Source: Auanema rhodensis
Lineage: Eukaryota; Animalia; Nematoda
DNA: 64,000 nucleotides
Direction: 5' to 3'
Assembly: GCA_964057225.1 (NCBI GenBank)
Contig: OZ059895.1
Span: forward strand, 14,198,001 to 14,262,000
The position numbers were made by a program, and so were the translations under genes. This document shows, piece by piece, positions 1 to 40,300 of this stretch; the first letter of the stretch is position 1; each line of letters starts with the position of its first letter. The notes under the pieces were generated by a model, which had not been told where the DNA came from, made no database searches, and was given only the letters and a program-made list of their open reading frames with translations.

Positions 1-2934
1 ATGCATCAGGTTTAAGAATATCATTAAGTACATCTATATCATTCTGAGCATATCCAAAGTTAAAATAGCAGAAAGTGATAATCTAAAAGAATTTTAAAAT
101 ATATATATTGATTTATTTAAAAATAATATTAATAATATTAAAATTATTAATAATTTATGTAATAATTACCAAAAATAATCGCATAATCCAAGATATATCG
201 TTTGTTTGAAGTAATCTGATTGACTAATAAGATCAAGAATATACTGAAGAATGTGAAATATAAAATATATTAAAGAAAAATGAATGAATGAATGAAGAAG
301 AAGAAGAAGAAGATGTATTTAAGTTTGAACATGAAGACAATGGCTATTTAAATACTTTTTTATTTCCATTTGTTTTAATTTTCTTAAGTTTAAGGTCGTA
401 TTAGCCTGCGGGCATATTACAACATAGGTGCGAAAACAAAAGACATCGAAACTAATGGTCGAACTTATGTAACTTCATTTCCGATTTCTTTTCTCGTTCT
501 AACATTTCCATCTCTTTTCAATTTCAAATACTGTTCCTTTTTAAAAATCATCAAAATTTAAAAAGAAGAAGAAGAAGAAATGAGATTAGAAGAAAAGAGA
601 ATAAAGAAAAAAAAAAGAAATAAAAGGTGAAATATTAAAAAATAAAAAGTCTTCTATATCAGCATAAGTTATAACTTTATTATAATTATATAAATAATTA
701 TATATTAAATATATTTAAAGCTTTCTGTTTAAAGATAATACTTTATGAACTTTTGTGATGTAAGACTATAATATTTCAGATACGATGAAACTTTATATAA
801 GGAGAAATGTTACAACAACAACATATATTGAAGAAACAATATGTATTCTCTTTATCAAATACACATGTAATATTTGAGATGAAACAAAAAAAAAAAAAAA
901 AAAGAAAAGAATAGAGAACGGAAACTTGTATTCGAGATTGAAAAACCGTTTTGTCGTTTACATCAGCATCAAAAGCTTTATATGGAAATTAAGGAAAATC
1001 GTATGATATATGACCTTGTTCTTTAAAAAAAAAACTTTTTTTCATACAATATCATATGTTATATAACTATATGTTTATTATGTTGTTTTCTAATAAGTTT
1101 TTTTTTGTACAAAACAAATCGAATAATACGAGGACGTGTCGATGTATCTTAGAATATATGTAGGTTCAGGTCAAAAATCATAGAATTTCGATTTTTCGCA
1201 TAAAAAAGTTCAAATTATGATCATTAAAAATAACTGTGACGTTATATCACGATACATATTTTAGAAGGCAGATAAGAGAAAAAACTTGTTAAAGAACAGC
1301 TAAGAAAGTTTCAAAAATCAAAAGTTTCGGAAGAAAGTTCAATAAGATTCTATAGGTCAAAAGGTGAAAAATGTATATTTTCATGGAATAATTGAAGTAA
1401 AAAGAAAGAAAACGAAGAAAAATATTATATAATTCAACGTTTTACGAAAGCATAGTATGTTTCTGAAACTTATGTTTCGAAGTAAAAGAGCAGCATGACA
1501 GGCGTGGAATGATTTTATATACCCTGAGGCATGTTCGAACGGTCAATTTCATTGTTCTATTGTGATGATGATGCAGGTGCAGTTAGACAGAATTCAACTT
1601 TTTTCCAAACGAATTCGAATTAGGCAGTTGTGTCCTAATAAACAACAAACATGACACAACAAGATAACAAAATAGAAAGGAAAACATCACATTAAATGAT
1701 TCTTGAACGGACAACTTCTTCAAAATATCATTCAGAAGATGATGTTTAGACGCTGGACAACAAACATTTTCCTTTTTTTTTGTTGTTGGTTTTCTTTCTA
1801 ATTTGAATATTTTAATTTAATAAAATATGTTTATTATAATCTATATACATATAGTTAACTCATATCATTTGATTAATTTCTTTTTTGCCCTACCATCAAC
1901 TCAGCACCACGCTTATTCTCGTCCAATATTGAACTTGAAAAGAAGCATTTTCTCGAGTGTGGGAATAATGCGCGAAAATCATAAAAGAGATAGATGACTC
2001 ATTATTAGTTTCTCAATTTTTTTTTCTCCCAATTCTGATATCTTTTATTAAATAAATAGACAAATATTTCTTATATTATATACTATAAACTATAATAATT
2101 TTATTAAAAATTATTAAAAATAAATAAATTATTAAATTAAATTATTAAAAATTAATTATTATTTATAAATAATTAAGTGAATAATTCAAATATACATAAT
2201 AAAATAAAATAAGTTCATGATGATGATGATGATGCTTCATAATCAGCAAACTCATCTTGAGTTAGAAGAAGAATAAAAAGAAAACAGTGAACTTGAACTA
2301 ACTAGATTTCAATGTTCGATGTGTGAACGTTTTCATCTGATATATGCTATAATCATATAAAATCTTTATTATAATTAATAAGTTAACGCAACAGGGGGTA
2401 CGAACAGATTAAAGGCGAGGTAGATGGAGTTGAAGTTGTTACAACTCAATCAAAATATGATTCATCTCTGAATTGCATTCCAAAATAAAAATAACTATAA
2501 CTATGTAATTATACGTATAGTTAAAGGACTGTGCGTATGATTATTCTAATTTTACGTGAAATCTTATTTTTCATTTTGATTCATCTATGTTAAAGTGATC
2601 GGTTGCATTCATTGAGCTATCAGCTTTTTCAAATTTTCAAAACTTTTTTCTTAAATATTTATTTAAAAATTAATATTTTTATGTTTATTTTTAATTATAT
2701 ATGTATAGTTATATTCGTATAGTTTAATGATTTAATAACTAAATGTTATCATGTTAATGTAATTTTCTAAAATATATGTATGTGTATGTATGTGTATGTA
2801 TGCCTGAGGGTTTATTACAAAACAATTGTCCAACTTGGCCAAACTATAAGATAAACCCGTTCTTTTTCTTCTAATATGATAGTTCTTCTACATATAAGCA
2901 AACTTTGCAAGAACCAATATGGAAATAGAAGTGA

Positions 2935-26022: not shown

Positions 26023-29109
<3,087 letters not shown>

Positions 29110-30157: not shown

Positions 30158-32400
30158 CTAACTGCGACTATATTCAAGAAGCGATGTTTTTTTCTGCAGC
30201 GAACCTATCAATGTTTGAGACGAACAATTATTAATCTGTAATGAGAAAATCAAAAACCACGAACGAAACTAATGGTCACCTTAACAACCACGTAATCACC
30301 AGGACAGATATCATCTGCACGGTTGAAAACTACTTTTGTGCCCCCATCACAGCGTCCTTGCATATGTTCAATAGATCTCTTCGATGTCTGAAAAAAAATA
30401 TCTCTGAGATAATCATCTTTGTATACACTAACCCCTTCCACCAACACAAGTTGGGTACTTCCTATCAAACTCGAATGCAAGGATAAAGAAGTTTCGCGAA
30501 AAACTGCAGCTAACTCTTCATGTCTTCTTTTTTTTATTTCAGCGGGAACATCATCTACAAGGCGATGATGGGCTCTTGTTTTCTAAATGTCATCATAACT
30601 TCAGCAAGAATTTGGTTAAAATGAACATACCCCACGCATACTGTACGGAAAAACATAACAGAAAGAATATCTAACAGTCCTAATAAGATCTAAAGTTTGT
30701 TGATGAGCTTCCTCTGTTTCGCCACAGAATCCAGCAATAAAATCACTAGTTATAGAAACATCTAAAAAAGATTCTGATTAAGATTATGCTTCATTATGGC
30801 CCCACCTGGTAACACTCTACGAACATCTTCTACCAAATTTATATATGCCTCTCGAGTATATCCCCGTCCCATTCTCTCAAGAGTTGCATTGTCCCCACTT
30901 TGAGCGGGCATGTGAAGCTGATTGCATATATTCGGCCTATCGCGAATAAGTTGAATTACCTGCAGTTAGAAACAAATAATTTCCAAAGTTAATTATCGAA
31001 GCCTACTTCAAACGGGAAATCCTTTGGATGAGGCGATGTGAATCGGATCCTCATCTCAGGATCTATTTCCGATACTTTTTCTAGTAGCGTTGTGAATGTT
31101 CTACCACCTTCCTTTGGCCTATGAAATCAAACTAGCTTTTTTTTTTCTAAATACAGATAAATCCTACTTGTATACTGTGGAAAAACCTTGTACACTTTCT
31201 GTAACAACAGGTGTAATGTTATGAATAGATTCCGACATATCACGGTAACTATTCACATTTTGCCCTAGAAGAGTAATCTGTTTGTATCCCTAACAAAACA
31301 AAAAAATGTTACAAAATATAATAAACGTGTAAAAACCTCTCCACTAAGACGGCGAACCTCTTCTAATATGGAATCAATAGGCCTACTTCTTTCTCTTCCT
31401 CGAGTAAAAGGAACTACACAATATGTACACATATTGTCACAACCTCTCATGATGGACCTGAAAACAAAATATTTAGAATAATTTATAGATTAATAAACTT
31501 ACACAAATGCAGTTCGTGTTTCCTGATCCACTCTTACCGGGGTAACATCAGCGTATGTTTCTTCCAAAGATAACTGAACATTAATGGCATTGATACCAGA
31601 TCGGGCAACAGCTAATAATCTTGTTAAATCTTTATATGAATCCGGACCTGAAACAATATCAGTGTTCTGGTAATGAAAGGTAGCACACACCAGCTACTAC
31701 ATCTACGAGTCCTTTGCGATCAAATAGACCGTGTTTTACATTTTCTGCCATACATCCTGCAAAAAATATAGTATTTTTTAAAATTATCAATTTAATTGTA
31801 AACCTAGAACTCCAACAATTTGAGACCTTGTAGCATTTCTTTTTATTTTTTTAAGCTCTTTCCAAACTTTTTCTTCAGCCCCTTCTCTTATTGAACATGT
31901 CATTAGCAATACTATATCAGCCTACATGTTGAATTGAATATTTGGAATCATACATGAAAAATTACCAATTGACTGCTATCAGTTTCTTCATAGCCACTTT
32001 GTAACAATAACGATTTTACTATTTCAATATCATTAACATTCATTTGGCATCCATATGTCACAAATTTTACTAAAATCTAAGTTCCTATATGTTTTTGAAA
32101 TTTTCACACCTTTTCTCCCTGCGCCGTTTAAATCTTCGGCATTCAAATACGTATCTGATTCTTGTATAGACGGAGATATTTTCTTATGTCTCTGACGTCT
32201 ATGTTCAGCTACTATAAAGTCATTAAGACTCGGTCCATCTACAAACCAGCATTTCTTAATTTAAATTCAAACGAAATACCTTTCAAACGGGATCTTCGAG
32301 CTTCGCTAGCCGAAATTTCTGAGCTAGAAGCTTGTACTGAATAAAATCTACTGGCAATAGTTCTAGTACAATTTAAAATAAAATTTGTCCTTTTAATCAT
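30158..32400 (-). CDS. CDK5RAP1: CDK5RAP1/MiaB-like mitochondrial tRNA methylthiotransferase
   Basis: TYGCQMN and TCSIRE (UPF0004 domain), [13 protein letters not shown], radical-SAM CxxxCxxC ([23 protein letters not shown]), [10 protein letters not shown]-terminal TRAM domain; basic mitochondrial-type N-terminus. Confidence 0.95.
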
Positions 32401-32653
32401 TATAAAAACTTAGATATTCATAATCAACTCAGATGAAATCCTTCAAAACCCATGAGTTATGGCTGAATTTGGTCCCGGTCAGATCAGACCACAGACGACA
32501 AGGGGAGATTGATTGGGGTCAGAGACGAAGAGTAAACAGCGTGTTCTGTGATATTAACGCATTTTGTCTTATCCACTTTTGAGCAAAGGTGTTATTTACT
32601 TACTTTAATTTCTTATTATTAATATTAATATTTTCAGACATTCTTCATTGAAA

Positions 32654-35178
32654 ATGTCACGTGATAGAAAGCCAGAAAGGGAAGAACGTCGGTACGAGGA
32701 TAGAAGAAGAGTTGATAGAGAGGATGGGTACGTTATTTTTATTTACTGTGCATGATATTGATATATTTTAATGTATTGTTATTCTCTCCTACATTCAATT
32801 GGATTCTAAATTTTTTGTCTTGTGTTTTCTTCTAATGGGATTTAATTTCTTGTACTTTTCTATGGAAATAAGCGTAAAAATTGACTATAATGTCACTTAA
32901 TTTTGACTCTTTTCTTAGTATTTTACAAAATTTATTTGCCCGGCAAAACATGCTTCTTCTCTTTACTGTCTCTGTATTCTTTCACTATGCATGTTATTTT
33001 TGAAACTATTCATATTTAGCTTGTATATATTTATATAAAGCCCAGTTCATTTTTGCAGCCGGCATCGTCGTGAACATGGTAGCCCAGGGCAGGGTCGCCC
33101 TCATAGATCCACAAACGTATCCGAGAAAAGAAATCCTTCTCATCATTATGCTAATCGTAATGAAAGAGGAATGGCTAGTTTCACAGGTTCTCCTTTCTTA
33201 GAAGGAGACCTTATGGCAGAAATTCCAAAAAAGAAATTTACTGGGCGTTGTCGCCTTTTTGTTGGTAACTTACCCAATGAAGTCAGTGAAGATGAATTAA
33301 AGAAACTCTTCTCTCCTCACGGAGATATCTCTGAATGTTACCTTAGCGGAAAGGGATTCGCTTTTCTTCGATTGGTGAATATTTATTATTAACTTGAGGG
33401 GTGGATTCTTAGGTGGACTGGGTTTATTTCTGTATGATTTGGACAAGTGTGTTTTCGGACTTTAAGCTTTAACTTTGGACTCTAGCTCAACTAATCCACC
33501 CCTCACATCTTTTTCTTGGGTTTTACACTTTTTTCTTATTAGGATACAAGAGCGCATGCCGAGAGCGCCAAAGAGGCCATAGATGGAAGAGCTCTCCATG
33601 GACGTCCCATCCGTGTCCGCTTCGCCGTGCATGGCGCTGCGCTTAGAATCAAGGAATTATCTCCAACTGTTTCAAACGAAATGCTTTATCATGCTTTTGC
33701 TCATTTTGGTGATGTTGAGAGAGCCATTCATATAGTTGATGAAAAAGGAAGACCAACGGGCGAAGGAATCGTTGAATTTGAAAGAAAGGGTCCTTGTCAG
33801 GAAGCATTACAAGCCATCAGAGAAAATGTCTTCATTCTCACAGCGTAAGTATTCATGATTTTCTTTTTTTCTTGCACCATTAACAGTTACCTATCCACTG
33901 TTGATCATTTGATTGTTGATTTGACTATTGTGTATAATCTAAAAATAGGAACTCGAAGCCTATCAGTGCTGAATCATTGGAACAAAAAGATGAAGATGAC
34001 GGGTTAGCTGAACGTATGATTCTTCGCACCCCTCAATTAAACAAGTAAGCTCTTGGACTAGTTTGGACTTGTCATGTGTATCAAATATGGACTGTCTGGG
34101 CATTTTAAATTTTTTTTCGTATTGGACTAACTTAGGGAGCGTGAAGTCGGACCTCGTTTTCCTGGTCCTAATTCTTTCGAATACATTTACGGTATGAAAT
34201 GGAAGGAGTTATACGAACTGGAAAAGCAACGTCGCTCTCAGTTCGAGGAAGAGCTCCTAGAAAGTAGACGTCGTCTCGAAGCAGACATGGAAGTAGCACA
34301 TCAGGACTATCAAGCACAAATGTTGAGAGAGGGTTAGTTGTTAATTACAACTTCTTAGTGGAACTCGCGAATGATCATAATCATTCGCCTCTTTTTTGCT
34401 TTTTATCTGGACTGCTTCGCATATTTTGCTCTACTTCATTATTTAACGGTGGCAGCCTTATGAATGTGTTTCTTATTATACTTAGACATTGAATATACTT
34501 TCAATATCATAGATAATTATATGCTTTCTAGATCTTCAACGTAGGCAACAAGAATTAGAGCGCTTAGAAGCCATGAGACGCGATCGTGTGCGCGCACCAC
34601 CTGGCGGGCCTGGAGGACCAGGGGGGCCAAATGGTCCTAGTGGGCCTCATGGTGGCCCAAGCGGCCCAGGCGGACCAGGCGGACCAATGATGGGTCCTAA
34701 CTCTGAATTTAATAAACATAATAAAATGTATGGACCACCACCTGGTCCTGGTGGACCTAACGGGCCTTTTAATCAGCCACGTAAGTGTTTGAAGTAAGTA
34801 TATTTAAAAACTATATTTTCAGCATTTGGAAGACCGCCAATGGGTAATCAGTATGGAGGCCCACCAATGAACATGGGATTTAGTGGACCACCACCTTCAA
34901 ATCATCATGAAGGACATCGTGGTGGTTAGTTAGGATGATTGATTTGCATAGTTTATTTCGTTCTTTTAGGCCCAGAAAGACCAAATCAATCCAATATGTT
35001 GGAAGGTGTACAAAGATTGTTACAAATATTTAAAAATGAACCAGCAGGGCCACCATCACCAAGGGGTTAGGAAGTTCATCAGATTTCGTTTTAATTTGCC
35101 AAAAATTTAGGAGGTCCAATGTATGGTGGATATGGTGGACCGGGAGATTTTCCACCTGAAAAACGGGCTCGTCGCTAA
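32654..35178 (+). CDS. nono-1: DBHS-family (NONO/SFPQ) RNA-binding protein
   Basis: RRM1 RCRLFVGNLP..KGFAFLRL, RRM2 ERAIHIVDEKGRPTGEGIVEF, NOPS domain (EDDGLAE...GPRFPGPNSFEYIYGMKWKELY), coiled coil, Gly/Pro-rich tail, C-terminal PEKRARR*. Confidence 0.95.
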
Positions 35179-35820
35179 GCTTACCAATATTTCAGTTTTG
35201 ATCTTATGCTTTATGGTGATCACCATATAATAATAATGTACATGCTCATCTCCTTTATTTTGCAAACAATATAATTTTTTATTACGTTTTAATTTATATA
35301 ATTATTGTTCAAGGGTTGAATAAAATAATTAAAAGAGTGTAATTTATTTCTCAAAAAATTCACATTTCATGATAAAGAAGTTGAACAAATCATTATCAGT
35401 AAGAACCAAATTAATGAAACAATTCTATTTCTAATGATCGTTCCTCAACACTACGATATATACTAGTTAAAAATAATTATCTTGATATAAGTGAAAAAAG
35501 ATGCAGTCAAATAACTTTCAAATTCTTTTTTATTTTAGATTAAATATAATATTAATTGAAACTTCATAGAAAGAACTTCTAATTCTCATTAGTGAAAGAA
35601 CAAGAATATATGAATTACGAACGAAAAATAAGATTGAAAACAATTTCTCTGTGCTAGGAGTCTTATTTCAATCTCAAGAATTCCTTCACCCACCGGTCTT
35701 CCATTTTCATCAACTATATGAATAGCTAACCACTATTTGCACTTGTAATCACGTCCTCGATATCTTTCATTTCTGTGCTTCCGTACCGTCGCCACCATCA
35801 ACATGTGTACATTTAAATTC

Positions 35821-35905
35821 CCCGCCCACCTCTGTGACGCGGCTATCAGACCCGGCTGTATGCTCTGGACTCGGCTGTGCGACGCGGCTAAAAAGGCGGA
35901 GCTTG
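35821..35905 (+). promoter_or_regulatory. GC-rich dlc-1 promoter module: CCCGCCCAC, 4x GACNCGGCT, GGCGGAGC
   Basis: Direct motif repeats ~330-410 bp upstream of the dlc-1 ATG, in AT-rich context. Confidence 0.55.
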
Positions 35906-36234
35906 CACTCGTGGCGCCATCACGGCCACTCTAGAACATTGGCTCGTTTAGTATTATTTCACTCAGAAATGACTTCAGTAAAATATTTTTTCTTACATTA
36001 TTATCTTTTGCTGAGCTGTGTTATGCTTACATATCGCTTTCTTTTATGTTAACTTCCCTTTGTGATTGTTCCATGTGCTATCACCTTTTTTTATCATTGA
36101 ATTGAGAATGACGTTATCTCAAAGCTATATGTTCCATATACTATAAGATGTTCAATTATTTTCATTTTTCTCTTTTACTGCTTTTCGTATCATTGTTTTC
36201 TCGTATTATGTTATATTTTGTTTGTTGCAGAAAA

Positions 36235-36667
<433 letters not shown>

Positions 36668-37340
36668 TTTTGAGTTTTTATGATTGTGTTTCTCATGTGA
36701 TGATCTTCTTATATAAAGCTACCCGCATTGGGCATAAATATTCTAATGTTTTTGTGAAGATAATGATTTGAGATGGGGTAGATAAAATTTGAAATAGCCA
36801 GAGTTTTCTGATTAATATTAACACAGTTAACATGTGAACAGATGAATTGAAGGTATTCGTAGTGGAACTCAAATATCTTCTATAAATACAACCGGCCAGC
36901 AGCGTACAAAAGTTGAATCAGCTGCAGCTGCATTGTTGAAAAATCTTTTAATTTAGGTTGCTCCGTTTGCAGAATGTGGATGGCCAAAAAGGATGCGTGA
37001 TCAAGCTACAGCAAGTGCTCACCGTGTTTGAGTTTAGTGATTTGTTCTTAAAGTTTGGATAAGTTTTTTTTTAAAAATGTGGACAACGTTCAATCATCTT
37101 AGACTTGTTTGGATAAAGGATAGGTTGATGACAGACGAAAAAAACTCTTTTCTTTGAATCATCAATTATGCTCTAATACCAATATCAGTATAACAATAAG
37201 TAATAGCACTTGCTAGTTGTCTTATCCTAGATGAAAATGTTGGTTGAAGACATGGAAGCAAAACGAAAATTCTTTATTATTTATTAGAATGAATTAATTG
37301 TTTCTAAGAAAATCACAGTTGCTGAAATATGATATGAAAT

Positions 37341-40300
37341 TTAAAACATTCCTCCTCTTCGTTTGCGATCAGCTCCTCTTTTCTTCATATCATTCTTATG
37401 CTTTTCTTTCATCTGTCTTTCTCGACCACCCGTGTAGTTGGAAGGGCGTGAAGACACTGGTGCGCCGTCTGTAAGTTAATGATACGATAGTGTCTATTAA
37501 GATATAACTGAATGTATTCCAGGGTATATTTTTTCGGAAGCGTCATCAAATTTCATGTCCTGTTCAAAACGAAATGAGTGAAAGTGCTGAACAAATATCT
37601 CGTATTCTTATCGAACGTTTTTTATGTAAAGCTATCTGCTCTCAAAAGTTTGAACCTAGTTTCCAAGACAATATAGATCTTTACAAATGGTTTTAAGAAA
37701 AGGTTACCAGGTGTTGCTGCAGGGGCTCCTCTTCCTCGCCCTCGATATCCTCTCGTTGGATTTCCTCCTCTTCTTACACCATTATCACTATTGGAAACAG
37801 CTGGTGCTCTGTCATCATTATCTTCATCATCCTCATCTCCATCTGATTTTGGCAGATCTTCGCTAAACATTTCTTGGTAACCGAATGAAAATCCGAAAAA
37901 AGCTTACTTCAGAGGTTCAACTTGGAATTCCCTAGCTTCATAACCATCATCATACTCGTCGTTATAAAGGTCGTCTTCAAACACACTTTCCATTTTATAA
38001 CTTTCGTATGTAGGACGGGTAGCAATCCTATCTTTTTCAGTGACTTTAAACTTAGTAATGCCATGTCTGAAAGTGCCATATATTAATAATCAGCTGCCTT
38101 ACTTGAAAGTCACTTTTTCGAAGAGGCCATGGGAATCAAAACTTCACCATGAAGTCCTTCCTGAGTCTTGTTAGAGCTCTCATTAGGTACTTCTTCTGGT
38201 ATGCTTGTTTTCAATCGATTCAAGCTTCTCCTAAGCTGTTCCATTGCCTATATTAATCAGTTTTTTGTTATTTTGGATATATATGTTCATGCAAACCTGC
38301 TCAATGTTATCAAACAAATCTGGTGGGGATTTCACAACATCTTCTTTTTTTGGAGGCGCTAAGCTGAATAAACCCTTAAAAGAAAAAATGTTAGCTGATT
38401 CTTAAAAATCTGAATGAACAACTTTAAACATGTTTGTTGAGCTTGAAGCATGATTTGGAGCGTCAACAACAGATCTTTCCGGACATGGTATTGCATTAGC
38501 AACAGCATCTGATGATAAAGAGTATATTTTGAGTGAACTAATTCAATTACCATGATCACTGAACGATAAACAAGGAAGTATCTGTTGAGTATTGCCATCT
38601 GGTCGCTGTAAATCAGCATTCTCCACTGTTAGGAGATCAAGAGGAAGAAAAGCTTCTTTCTGTACAAGTGCTTCAATAGCCTCCGTTGAGGAAAAATTGA
38701 AATGACGAAGCAGTAGCTGAAACACGACCGATTTCAAAATTCAAAAAAATGACTTCGAGCAAAATTATTTTAGTTTTTTAGCTGTTGGTAGGCGGCTGCT
38801 CACACAATTTTACTAACTTTCACGGTAAATGAATCTATTAACCCGTTACACCCTAAGAAATGAATTTGGTTTAGATGCTAGAGTTTCCTTTCCCCATAGA
38901 TCCAGCAACACAAAAATATACATTCGAATATACTGACCCTAAACCGATTTCTCCTGTTCGGCTGTCACCTGACAATCCTACATATCGTATGCTTTTCAAA
39001 TCATTAGTCATGAAAAAAATGTATTTGTTTTAGAGTTCATAGAGATATTAAATTTATTTGAAGTTTCATGTAAAAAGTTACTTTCTCAAAAAAAATCTCC
39101 GAGCTTAAGAGATTCTGTTTTGCTGCGAAATATGTGTAACCGATTATTGGATCATCTTCAAAAACTATTGAATGTTGATATTTTCAATTAGAGAGGTTAG
39201 TAAGATTTCGTAATAATTGAAAAAGTTTGAAATTCAAACATACGTGAACAAAAGCTGGTGTTAAGTCTGGGAAGATATCCAATATTTCTTGAACAGAATT
39301 CTTTTGGGATTGATTTAATGCTTCGAAGTTTCCGAGATTCTAAAAATTTGATATTTCAGACTGAATGCAAACTAACATCTTCACAATTAAATATATTTTA
39401 CTAACTACTATTTGTTTCTATATTCTATTGAATAAACTTTTCACCTTAAGTAATCCTAACTTTGCAAGTTTTTGAAATGTTTTCTCGATTTGAACTAATG
39501 ATATTCCTTCAACTAGATTTTGGTATTGATGTACTTTATCTGGGCAATCTTGCAGAAAATTGATAATATCATATTTTTTATGAAGGACAAAGATGAACCT
39601 GAAATCAAAATCAAATCTCTAACAATCCCGAAATTTCAGATAAAAGATAGTTAGATTACCTTTCATTGATAGCAGCATCAGAAATTAATTTAAATCTCGA
39701 TTCAGTTGTCTTCAAGTTTGATAGCAACGTTTTGAACAAAGAAACAGCTTCATATTCAATCATGGACATAAGTCTAAGGAGCCGCCTAAAAGAAGGAAAA
39801 TTTATTATTTCTCGATGAATTAAGTAAATACTTTTGAGGATTGAAAGGTAAATTCATAGAAATATCGAAAATATCCTCAATTTGTAAGGTGGACGATATA
39901 ATTTCTACAAGTTCTGGTAATCTGAAGATAATAAATTAATATATATTTGACAGAACTTGGTAAGCTAACCCTGCAACGAAGTCAACTATCCTTGTTAAAG
40001 TCAAAGAACTTTTTTCTAAGACTTGGAATGTTATATGAGTGACATATATATGATTGAGGACTGTTATCAAGTACTCGTCGATCAATTTGGCGTATTGGTA
40101 TTTCTTATAATTATGATTTCTTTTAAAACCTTTCAACAACACGTCTACATACTCTCCTAAGCGTCCATTCATCTAAAGTCAATTAGTCATATTTTATTTC
40201 TACGAATATCCTACTTCTCCTAAACTACTTGTGAAAGCTGGAATTTCCTTTTTGTGCCATTCACTTAGTTTTGATCTATAGTTGACTATCTAAATCTTTT

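Follow-up and report, generated by a model that had tools for sequence, protein, structure and literature searches.

A conserved UGGACU array and closing helix in nematode nono-1 introns, a candidate RNA element for control of unproductive splicing

The introns of the nono-1-type DBHS gene of Auanema rhodensis contain an array of the hexamer UGGACU (TGGACT in DNA), part of which is enclosed by a perfect inverted repeat, and comparable arrays and helices are present in the nono-1 introns of other nematodes. The gene is located on the forward strand of contig OZ059895.1 within a 64,000-nt stretch of DNA (positions 14,198,001 to 14,262,000 of the contig), which is referred to here as the window and to which all coordinates below apply. 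The motif array and helix very probably constitute a functional element at the level of RNA, since copies are biased to the sense strand and the helices are species-specific, and this element probably controls splicing or retention of nono-1, as indicated by the copies that lie next to splice sites and by the selective retention of certain introns. The explanation favoured here, with moderate confidence, is that of a cis-acting RNA element in nono-1 pre-mRNA, i.e., a structured multivalent platform that would control unproductive splicing and for which NONO-1 would be the likeliest reader.

The UGGACU array and its host gene

The hexamer was assessed by comparison of orthologous loci in Auanema sp. 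JU1783, Mesorhabditis belari, Caenorhabditis briggsae, C. bovis, Pristionchus fissidentatus, Cylicocyclus nassatus, Steinernema carpocapsae, Bursaphelenchus xylophilus, Cercopithifilaria johnstoni and one environmental nematode contig. Orthologous exons were located with tblastn and hexamers were counted in introns 2-5, the window being left out as the discovery set. The comparison spans clades III, IV and V, with C. elegans, Brugia malayi, Trichinella papuae and clades I/II outside the set. TGGACT ranked first of 4096 hexamers in introns 2-5 of these ten other nematodes, with 44 sense copies as opposed to 6.5 expected (Poisson p 5e-22), while antisense copies numbered only 3 (binomial p 2.5e-10). 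Exclusion of Auanema sp. JU1783 left 37 copies as opposed to 6.15 expected. At least three copies were present in nine of the ten species, and the motif singled out in an earlier note, which was made from the window sequence alone, is therefore both conserved and enriched in orthologous nono-1 introns. No TGGACT was noted in the DBHS genes of two low-GC eukaryotic contigs of unidentified taxon (L043 and L045).

The hexamer itself appears to be the conserved unit. Alignment of 45 copies with 12 nt on either side indicated no consensus outside TGGACT, apart from a mild upstream preference for U, and intron sequence around the element was not alignable beyond the closest relative while the element was kept in three major clades. 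Single copies have been gained or lost between the window and Auanema sp. JU1783 with copy number held, which fits selection on the array. In intron 4, two sites are fixed more widely, namely that at about +10 (window, Auanema sp. JU1783 and C. briggsae) and that which ends 8 nt ahead of the acceptor (window, Auanema sp. JU1783 and Cylicocyclus). In intron 5 of Auanema sp. JU1783 and C. briggsae, copies are about as far from the 5' splice site as is the copy at 34408 in the window.

The positions listed in the earlier note, i.e., seven forward-strand TGGACT copies, including four in the 91-nt intron 4, together with one TGGACA and one CGGACT, were all correct:

33414..33419, forward strand: TGGACT copy 1 of intron 2, 6 nt past the 5' arm of the closing helix; kept in Auanema sp. 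JU1783
33440..33445, forward strand: TGGACA variant in the intron 2 loop; identical in Auanema sp. JU1783
33456..33461, forward strand: CGGACT variant in the intron 2 loop; identical in Auanema sp. JU1783
33476..33481, forward strand: TGGACT copy 2 of intron 2, 11 nt ahead of the 3' arm of the closing helix; compared with Auanema sp. JU1783
34054..34059, forward strand: TGGACT at +10 of intron 4, beside the 5' splice site; same place in Auanema sp. JU1783 and C. briggsae
34064..34069, forward strand: second TGGACT of intron 4, with CGGACT as its counterpart in Auanema sp. JU1783
34088..34093, forward strand: TGGACT copy 3 of intron 4; sequence match
34123..34128, forward strand: TGGACT at -13 to -8 of the intron 4 acceptor; same place in Auanema sp. 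JU1783 and Cylicocyclus
34408..34413, forward strand: TGGACT, sole copy of intron 5, within the only conserved block of that intron

The copy at 34123 overlaps ACTAAC, as had been described, and lies 5 nt ahead of the acceptor CTTAG|G. The 3' splice consensus of nematodes is UUUUCAG|R, which is read by U2AF (PMC2762039). Compared with this consensus, the intron 4 acceptor of the window (AACUUAG|G) is weak, and those of Auanema sp. JU1783 and Cylicocyclus are likewise off consensus.

Within the window, the total number of TGGACT copies was ordinary (22 on both strands as opposed to 23.6 expected), although their clustering stood out, 7 of the 16 forward-strand copies falling within 1 kb. Four copies in 80 nt was the top cluster at that scale among non-self-overlapping hexamers of the window, with an uncorrected p of about 2e-5 that rose to about 0.1 after correction for all hexamers and both strands. 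These window statistics alone make the cluster only suggestive; the case for it is decisive because the cluster is replicated in other species and is unique in the 181-Mb genome.

Uniqueness was assessed by a scan of the 181 Mb for three TGGACT copies separated by gaps of at most 30 nt, with the reversed pattern as a control. The pattern was found at 69 places and the reversed control at 5, and most of the places listed were tandem repeats. Five non-tandem places lay outside a repeat family with a unit of 8.4 kb, namely nono-1, three others that were inspected and C27:138, which is at a contig end and was outside inspection. A genome-wide regulon was considered and rejected: the tandem repeats comprised the 8.4-kb unit and coding repeats, and of the three inspected unique clusters one was collagen coding sequence, one a coding exon of V-ATPase-proteolipid-like type and one a coding-like tract that is repetitive. 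Thus, among the clusters inspected, the nono-1 array is the only cluster of at least three copies that is neither coding nor repeat, and the earlier impression that nothing comparable occurs elsewhere extends, for those clusters, from the window to the genome. Judged from sequence comparison, the array is a conserved, sense-strand-only and gene-specific feature of nono-1 introns across nematodes. The tandem unit of about 8.4 kb, which contains repeated TGGACTTGGAAATTTTTTTT and was noted on contigs C8, C12, C13, C20, C21, C50 and C75 (e.g., L020-L028), is possibly a ribosomal DNA unit or a satellite.

The host gene was delineated from GT..AG joints and spliced RNA contigs:

32654..35179, forward strand: nono-1-type DBHS gene from its start codon to its stop codon, divided into nine exons with GT..AG joints, spliced RNA contigs in four runs
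32654-32727, 33059-33374 and 33543-33844, forward strand: exons 1-3
33949-34044, 34136-34332 and 34532-34780, forward strand: exons 4-6, followed by three short exons
32728-33058, forward strand: intron 1, 331 nt, from spliced RNA contigs
33375-33542, forward strand: intron 2, 168 nt, which splits RRM1 and holds the structured module
33845-33948, forward strand: intron 3, 104 nt, from spliced RNA contigs
34045-34135, forward strand: intron 4, 91 nt, which splits the NOPS domain; joint 34044/34136
34333-34531, forward strand: intron 5, 199 nt, from spliced RNA contigs
Introns 6-8, forward strand: 42-45 nt, from spliced RNA contigs

When the exons were searched singly against Pfam, RRM_1 matches were obtained for exon 2 (E 1.7e-10) and exon 3 (E 5.9e-13), and NOPS matches for exon 4 (E 1.2e-6) and exon 5 (E 4.3e-9), the latter domain being divided by intron 4. 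The predicted product thus has the DBHS architecture of two tandem RRMs followed by NOPS. Protein identity was likewise searched exon by exon rather than with the joined spliced product. The closest protein was that of Auanema sp. JU1783, with 84-93% identity per exon over exons 2-5, and the best relatives were nematode NONO-1/PSF-1 proteins, exon 3 being approximately 85% identical to C. brenneri CBN-PSF-1 and to the C. briggsae protein. These matches place the source of the DNA among rhabditids close to Auanema rather than in C. elegans. A six-frame family search of the 181 Mb returned this gene as the sole NOPS match, and it is present as a sole DNA copy. The host gene is therefore the single DBHS (nono-1-type) gene of the genome.

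The closing helix and unspliced introns

A perfect inverted repeat in intron 2 forms a 13-bp helix that encloses two TGGACT copies and the two one-letter variants, and a helix of this length was reached by none of 1000 shuffles. Its arms are as follows:

33395..33407, forward strand: closing helix 5' arm (TGAGGGGTGGATT), one half of the perfect 13-bp inverted repeat, paired in the minimum-free-energy fold
33493..33505, forward strand: closing helix 3' arm (AATCCACCCCTCA), which pairs with 33395-33407

A core of 12 bp is identical between the window and Auanema sp. JU1783. The whole of intron 2 is 80% identical between these species, equal to the flanking exons; identity is 33-60% for the other nono-1 introns and 61% for third codon positions. 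Neither the helix nor this exon-like conservation of intron 2 was mentioned in the earlier note. A clear GC-rich helix around the main cluster was noted in eight species with unrelated arm sequences, and the helices of the other nematodes were as follows:

C. briggsae: enclosing helix of about 22 bp
Pristionchus: enclosing helix of 21 nt with a 14-bp perfect core
Environmental contig L042: enclosing helix of 16 nt with one mismatch
Bursaphelenchus: enclosing helix of 11 bp, perfect
Steinernema: enclosing helix of 11 bp, perfect
Mesorhabditis: enclosing helix of 11 bp, perfect
Cercopithifilaria: enclosing helix of 10 nt, 90%
Cylicocyclus: weak 10-bp candidate only

With dinucleotide shuffles of the flanks as the null and Fisher combination over species, the helix was significant without Auanema sp. 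JU1783 for both the longest perfect run (p 1e-8) and duplex energy (p 5e-7). Retention of the helix through such different sequences is, so far as the aligned loci indicate, covariation at the level of the whole helix.

The module so defined is a GC-rich helix of approximately 10-25 bp that closes a domain of 70-260 nt with two to four UGGACU, the first of which is usually 6-15 nt past the 5' arm. Three or four copies are present in the modules of most species and two exact copies plus two variants in those of the window and Auanema sp. JU1783. The module is mostly in intron 2 but in intron 4 of Mesorhabditis and Cercopithifilaria and in intron 5 of Steinernema, and since the host intron varies by lineage the module behaves as a portable unit. 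No Rfam 15 family match above threshold and no tRNA were found in 32000-37500. For intron 4, folding indicated no structure beyond that of shuffles (z +0.54). Over longer range, the end of exon 4 (34027-34044) could pair with 33386-33403 (18 nt, 83%), but this candidate was dropped, as it was weaker by eye in Auanema sp. JU1783 and its exon side is constrained by coding.

Unspliced nono-1 introns were noted in assembled RNA contigs from four public runs (X1 to X4). Thus, a contig of unspliced intron 2 (33346-33571), which extended 29 nt into each flanking exon, was present in all four runs, with a k-mer depth of roughly one quarter of spliced plus unspliced (a rough figure). Intron 1 was covered unspliced in three of the four runs and introns 3 and 4 in X1 and X4 only, while introns 5-8 were covered in none, which rules out genomic DNA as the source. 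As read from the sequence, retention of intron 2 stops the frame after 5 codons and retention of intron 4 stops it at once (AAG TAA). Any of introns 2-4, if retained, leads to a stop within 1-6 codons, and intron 1 to a stop at the tenth codon. A premature-stop isoform tied to the element is thus present in RNA, through intron 2 in every run and through introns 3 and 4 in half of them, although the contig levels are rough.

Two further RNA patterns were seen in single runs. In run X4, a joint between 32726 and 34531 (exon 1 to exon 6) skips the RRM and NOPS exons and shifts the frame, with a depth of 17.5 as opposed to 40.7 for the exon 1-2 joint. In run X1, a contig at 32699-33375 carried intron 1 continuous with exon 2, with no exon 1-2 joint and with 32600-32690 uncovered, a pattern that reflects either an alternative start inside intron 1 or lost 5' coverage.

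Candidate mechanism, readers and alternative explanations

In the mechanism we infer, component A of the element would be the helix-closed module with its UGGACU words, here in intron 2, and component B the additional UGGACU on the splice sites of intron 4 (+10 of the donor; -13 to -8 of the weak acceptor) together with the single copy in intron 5. A UGGACU-reading protein, when abundant, would load cooperatively on the array, and the loaded protein may block access of U1 and U2AF at intron 4 and stall removal of neighbouring introns. Transcripts that keep introns 2-4, with their immediate stops, would then be detained in the nucleus or degraded, and NONO-1 output would drop. Were the reader NONO-1, it would act as an obligate dimer with four RRMs, DBHS proteins being able to polymerise through the coiled coil, and the result would be a negative feedback loop. 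Binding and identity of the reader, the causal role of the element and the fate of retained transcripts are thus the putative parts of this scheme.

Self-recognition is indicated by the uniqueness of the array in the genome and by its location in the only DBHS gene, and a multivalent array suits DBHS proteins because these are obligate dimers that oligomerise. NONO-1 itself is accordingly the candidate reader of UGGACU, an assignment that is plausible but tentative. A bolder version, in which UGGACU is a specific DBHS recognition word and the module an ancient nematode RNA that seeds NONO-1 polymerisation, serves as a feedback sensor and possibly acts as an excised small architectural RNA like NEAT1, is unlikely.

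Several observations weigh against the proposed splicing platform or against NONO-1 as its reader. The earlier note had proposed that the motif-bearing introns are regulated by retention, and in agreement with this proposal introns 2 and 4 were found unspliced and introns 5-8 never; retention did not, however, follow motif count, introns 1 and 3 being kept with zero copies and intron 5 spliced with one conserved copy. The RNA contigs come from one study for which the library type is not on record, and their depth is only rough and is not a measure of RNA level. The predicted single-strandedness of motif copies was no higher than that of the sequence around them (0.35 as opposed to 0.39, p 0.43). 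Between the window and Auanema sp. JU1783 the arms of the helix do not vary and thus offer no compensatory series of single bases inside one lineage; recurrence across species, each with its own sequence, is what the helix evidence rests on. In C. bovis, introns 2-5 of nono-1 are long (1.1-1.4 kb) and contain zero TGGACT and no visible substitute motif, which is a natural loss of the element. Finally, DBHS proteins are promiscuous RNA binders with low-micromolar binding of G- or U-rich homopolymers (PMC8754649; bioRxiv 10.1101/2020.03.18.996827), and UGGACU was not found as a DBHS motif in the literature.

The alternative that survives best, although it is rather unlikely, is that the same cis element is read by another sequence-specific RNA-binding protein (an IMP/IGF2BP-type KH protein, an hnRNP or an SR protein), with nono-1 as the regulated target. 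The evidence of conservation, strand and structure fits this alternative equally, known DBHS RNA binding looks weakly specific, and IGF2BP proteins are reported to prefer UGGAC (PMC10491980). The difference in retention between runs X1 and X4 and runs X2 and X3 could also reflect a stage- or sex-specific regulator. A general regulator should, however, have many clustered targets, and no other cluster that is neither coding nor repeat was noted among those inspected in 181 Mb. Moreover, arrays in the gene of an RNA-binding protein are typically sites of self-recognition, uaf-1 reportedly being an example (see below), and IMP proteins are mainly cytoplasmic.

Less probable still is the view that the excised module persists as a discrete stable intronic RNA with a role in trans, e.g., that of a scaffold or sponge for NONO-1, and that retention would be a by-product. 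The module is self-contained and closed by a helix, its host intron (2, 4 or 5) varies as for a portable unit, and it may lie far from splice sites, e.g., 1067-1207 nt into a 2.3-kb intron of Bursaphelenchus and 114-239 nt into a 905-nt intron of C. briggsae. In mammals, moreover, DBHS proteins are organised by the architectural RNA NEAT1. On the other hand, continuity of the intron 2 contig with 29 nt of both exons places exon-intron junctions in the RNA, the intron 4 copies on splice sites point to control of splicing, and the module is without an Rfam match.

The array might also be an element at the level of DNA, i.e., an intronic enhancer or an array of transcription factor sites, or a functionless product of chance or of a lineage-specific repeat. 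Intronic enhancers are common in nematode genes, and the window cluster is only marginal after correction for all hexamers. Either possibility is nevertheless highly improbable, since the 44:3 ratio of sense to antisense copies is unexpected for DNA sites, complementary arms that differ between species make sense only at the RNA level, recurrence in clades III-V is incompatible with chance, and the copies belong to no tandem or dispersed repeat.

Least credible is the possibility that the GGACU cores are METTL3/14-type N6-methyladenosine (m6A) sites that control splicing, a reading that the earlier note had itself doubted: UGGACU does hold the canonical DRACH core GGACU, and intronic m6A sites can affect splicing, but the hexamer is strict, with invariant first and last U and TGGACT far above other GGAC hexamers, the closing helix would have no role, and six-frame family searches of the 181 Mb returned no MT-A70 (PF05063) and no YTH (PF04146) match, a weak negative in that the named control genomes were silent. 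The same search method did find NOPS exon pieces of 25-29 residues, which serve as its positive control. DRACH variants other than TGGACT were not enriched in nono-1 introns, TTGGAC being the overlapping shadow of TGGACT.

Related systems and surroundings of the gene

The splicing platform proposed here has its closest counterpart in human SFPQ, which binds its own retained intron (PMC5964114) and has been proposed to autoregulate by unproductive splicing (PMC6547761). The two cases share the DBHS family, a regulatory region in the gene's own pre-mRNA and an isoform that is intron-retaining or unproductive, and in both self-binding is proposed. In SFPQ, the region is the 9-kb last intron (intron 9), with a switch to a distal 3' untranslated region (UTR), and no defined short motif or closing helix has been reported, whereas nono-1 carries a strict hexamer array and a helix that appears to covary in short internal introns that split RRM1 and NOPS. 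Self-binding of SFPQ was shown by crosslinking and immunoprecipitation (CLIP), while the nono-1 case is known from sequence and RNA contigs.

A second parallel is with C. elegans uaf-1, in which, as MacMorris, Zorio and Blumenthal are said to have described in 1999, an alternative exon contains about ten UUUUCAG/R sites for U2AF and gives rise to nuclear-retained RNA. By this account, both genes have a conserved multi-copy array of a short word in the pre-mRNA of a nematode RNA-processing gene, tied to an unproductive retained transcript. The uaf-1 word, however, is the known site of the encoded protein and no enclosing helix is said to be described, while the nono-1 reader is only a candidate. 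Detained introns and decay coupled to intron retention are a known class in genes for RNA-binding proteins. Similarly, neighbouring nono-1 introns are unspliced in a sizeable fraction while others in the gene are removed, although detained introns are usually set by kinetics and weak sites rather than by a strict conserved hexamer array in a structured module. The likeness to the m6A consensus DRACH (GGACU) or to the UGGAC of IGF2BP proteins (PMC10491980) is one of letters only, the nono-1 array being a strict hexamer, in one gene, within a helix. In a full-text literature search, no paper was found in which UGGACU or TGGACT is connected with nono-1, with DBHS proteins or with nematode introns. 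Intronic arrays through which the gene of an RNA-binding protein is itself regulated are a known kind of element, while novelty appears to lie in the word, in the closure of the architecture by a helix and in how deeply the element is conserved.

Nuclear RNA handling, paraspeckles and motor-neuron disease all centrally involve the DBHS proteins NONO, SFPQ and PSPC1. Their RNA specificity has been called promiscuous and their autoregulation only sketched, whereas evolution in nono-1 points to one strict six-letter word set in a defined RNA architecture. If NONO-1 reads UGGACU, the array would give DBHS proteins a binding code and would offer a compact model of their homeostasis; a different reader would amount to a dedicated regulator of nono-1. 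Recombinant NONO-1 dimer from C. elegans was crystallised earlier (Knott et al. 2015), and C. bovis, with the element lost, provides a natural control.

Several features were noted around the gene. On the reverse strand at 35663-35727, about 480 nt past the stop codon, lies a 65-nt inverted copy that is 83% identical to part of exon 3 (33722-33786). Pairing of this copy with exon 3 would be possible were the 3' UTR to extend that far. The fragment was considered as a conserved antisense partner but rejected, being absent in Auanema sp. JU1783. Between nono-1 and the next gene, the AT-rich intergenic DNA contains a GC-rich block at 35840-35960 without an Rfam or tRNA match. A sub-threshold SNORD11-like C/D box match at 37030-37106 on the forward strand (24 bits as opposed to a gathering score of 55, E 0.42), which is outside the gene, is probably due to chance. 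Upstream, at 26800-29000 on the forward strand, a polyubiquitin gene with head-to-tail ubiquitin repeats is the source of all stronger 1-kb hexamer clusters in the window. Downstream, a dynein light chain (LC8-type) gene at 36235-36667 is on the same strand as nono-1 (forward). In Auanema sp. JU1783 this neighbour is on the opposite strand, and a small inversion therefore separates the two species.

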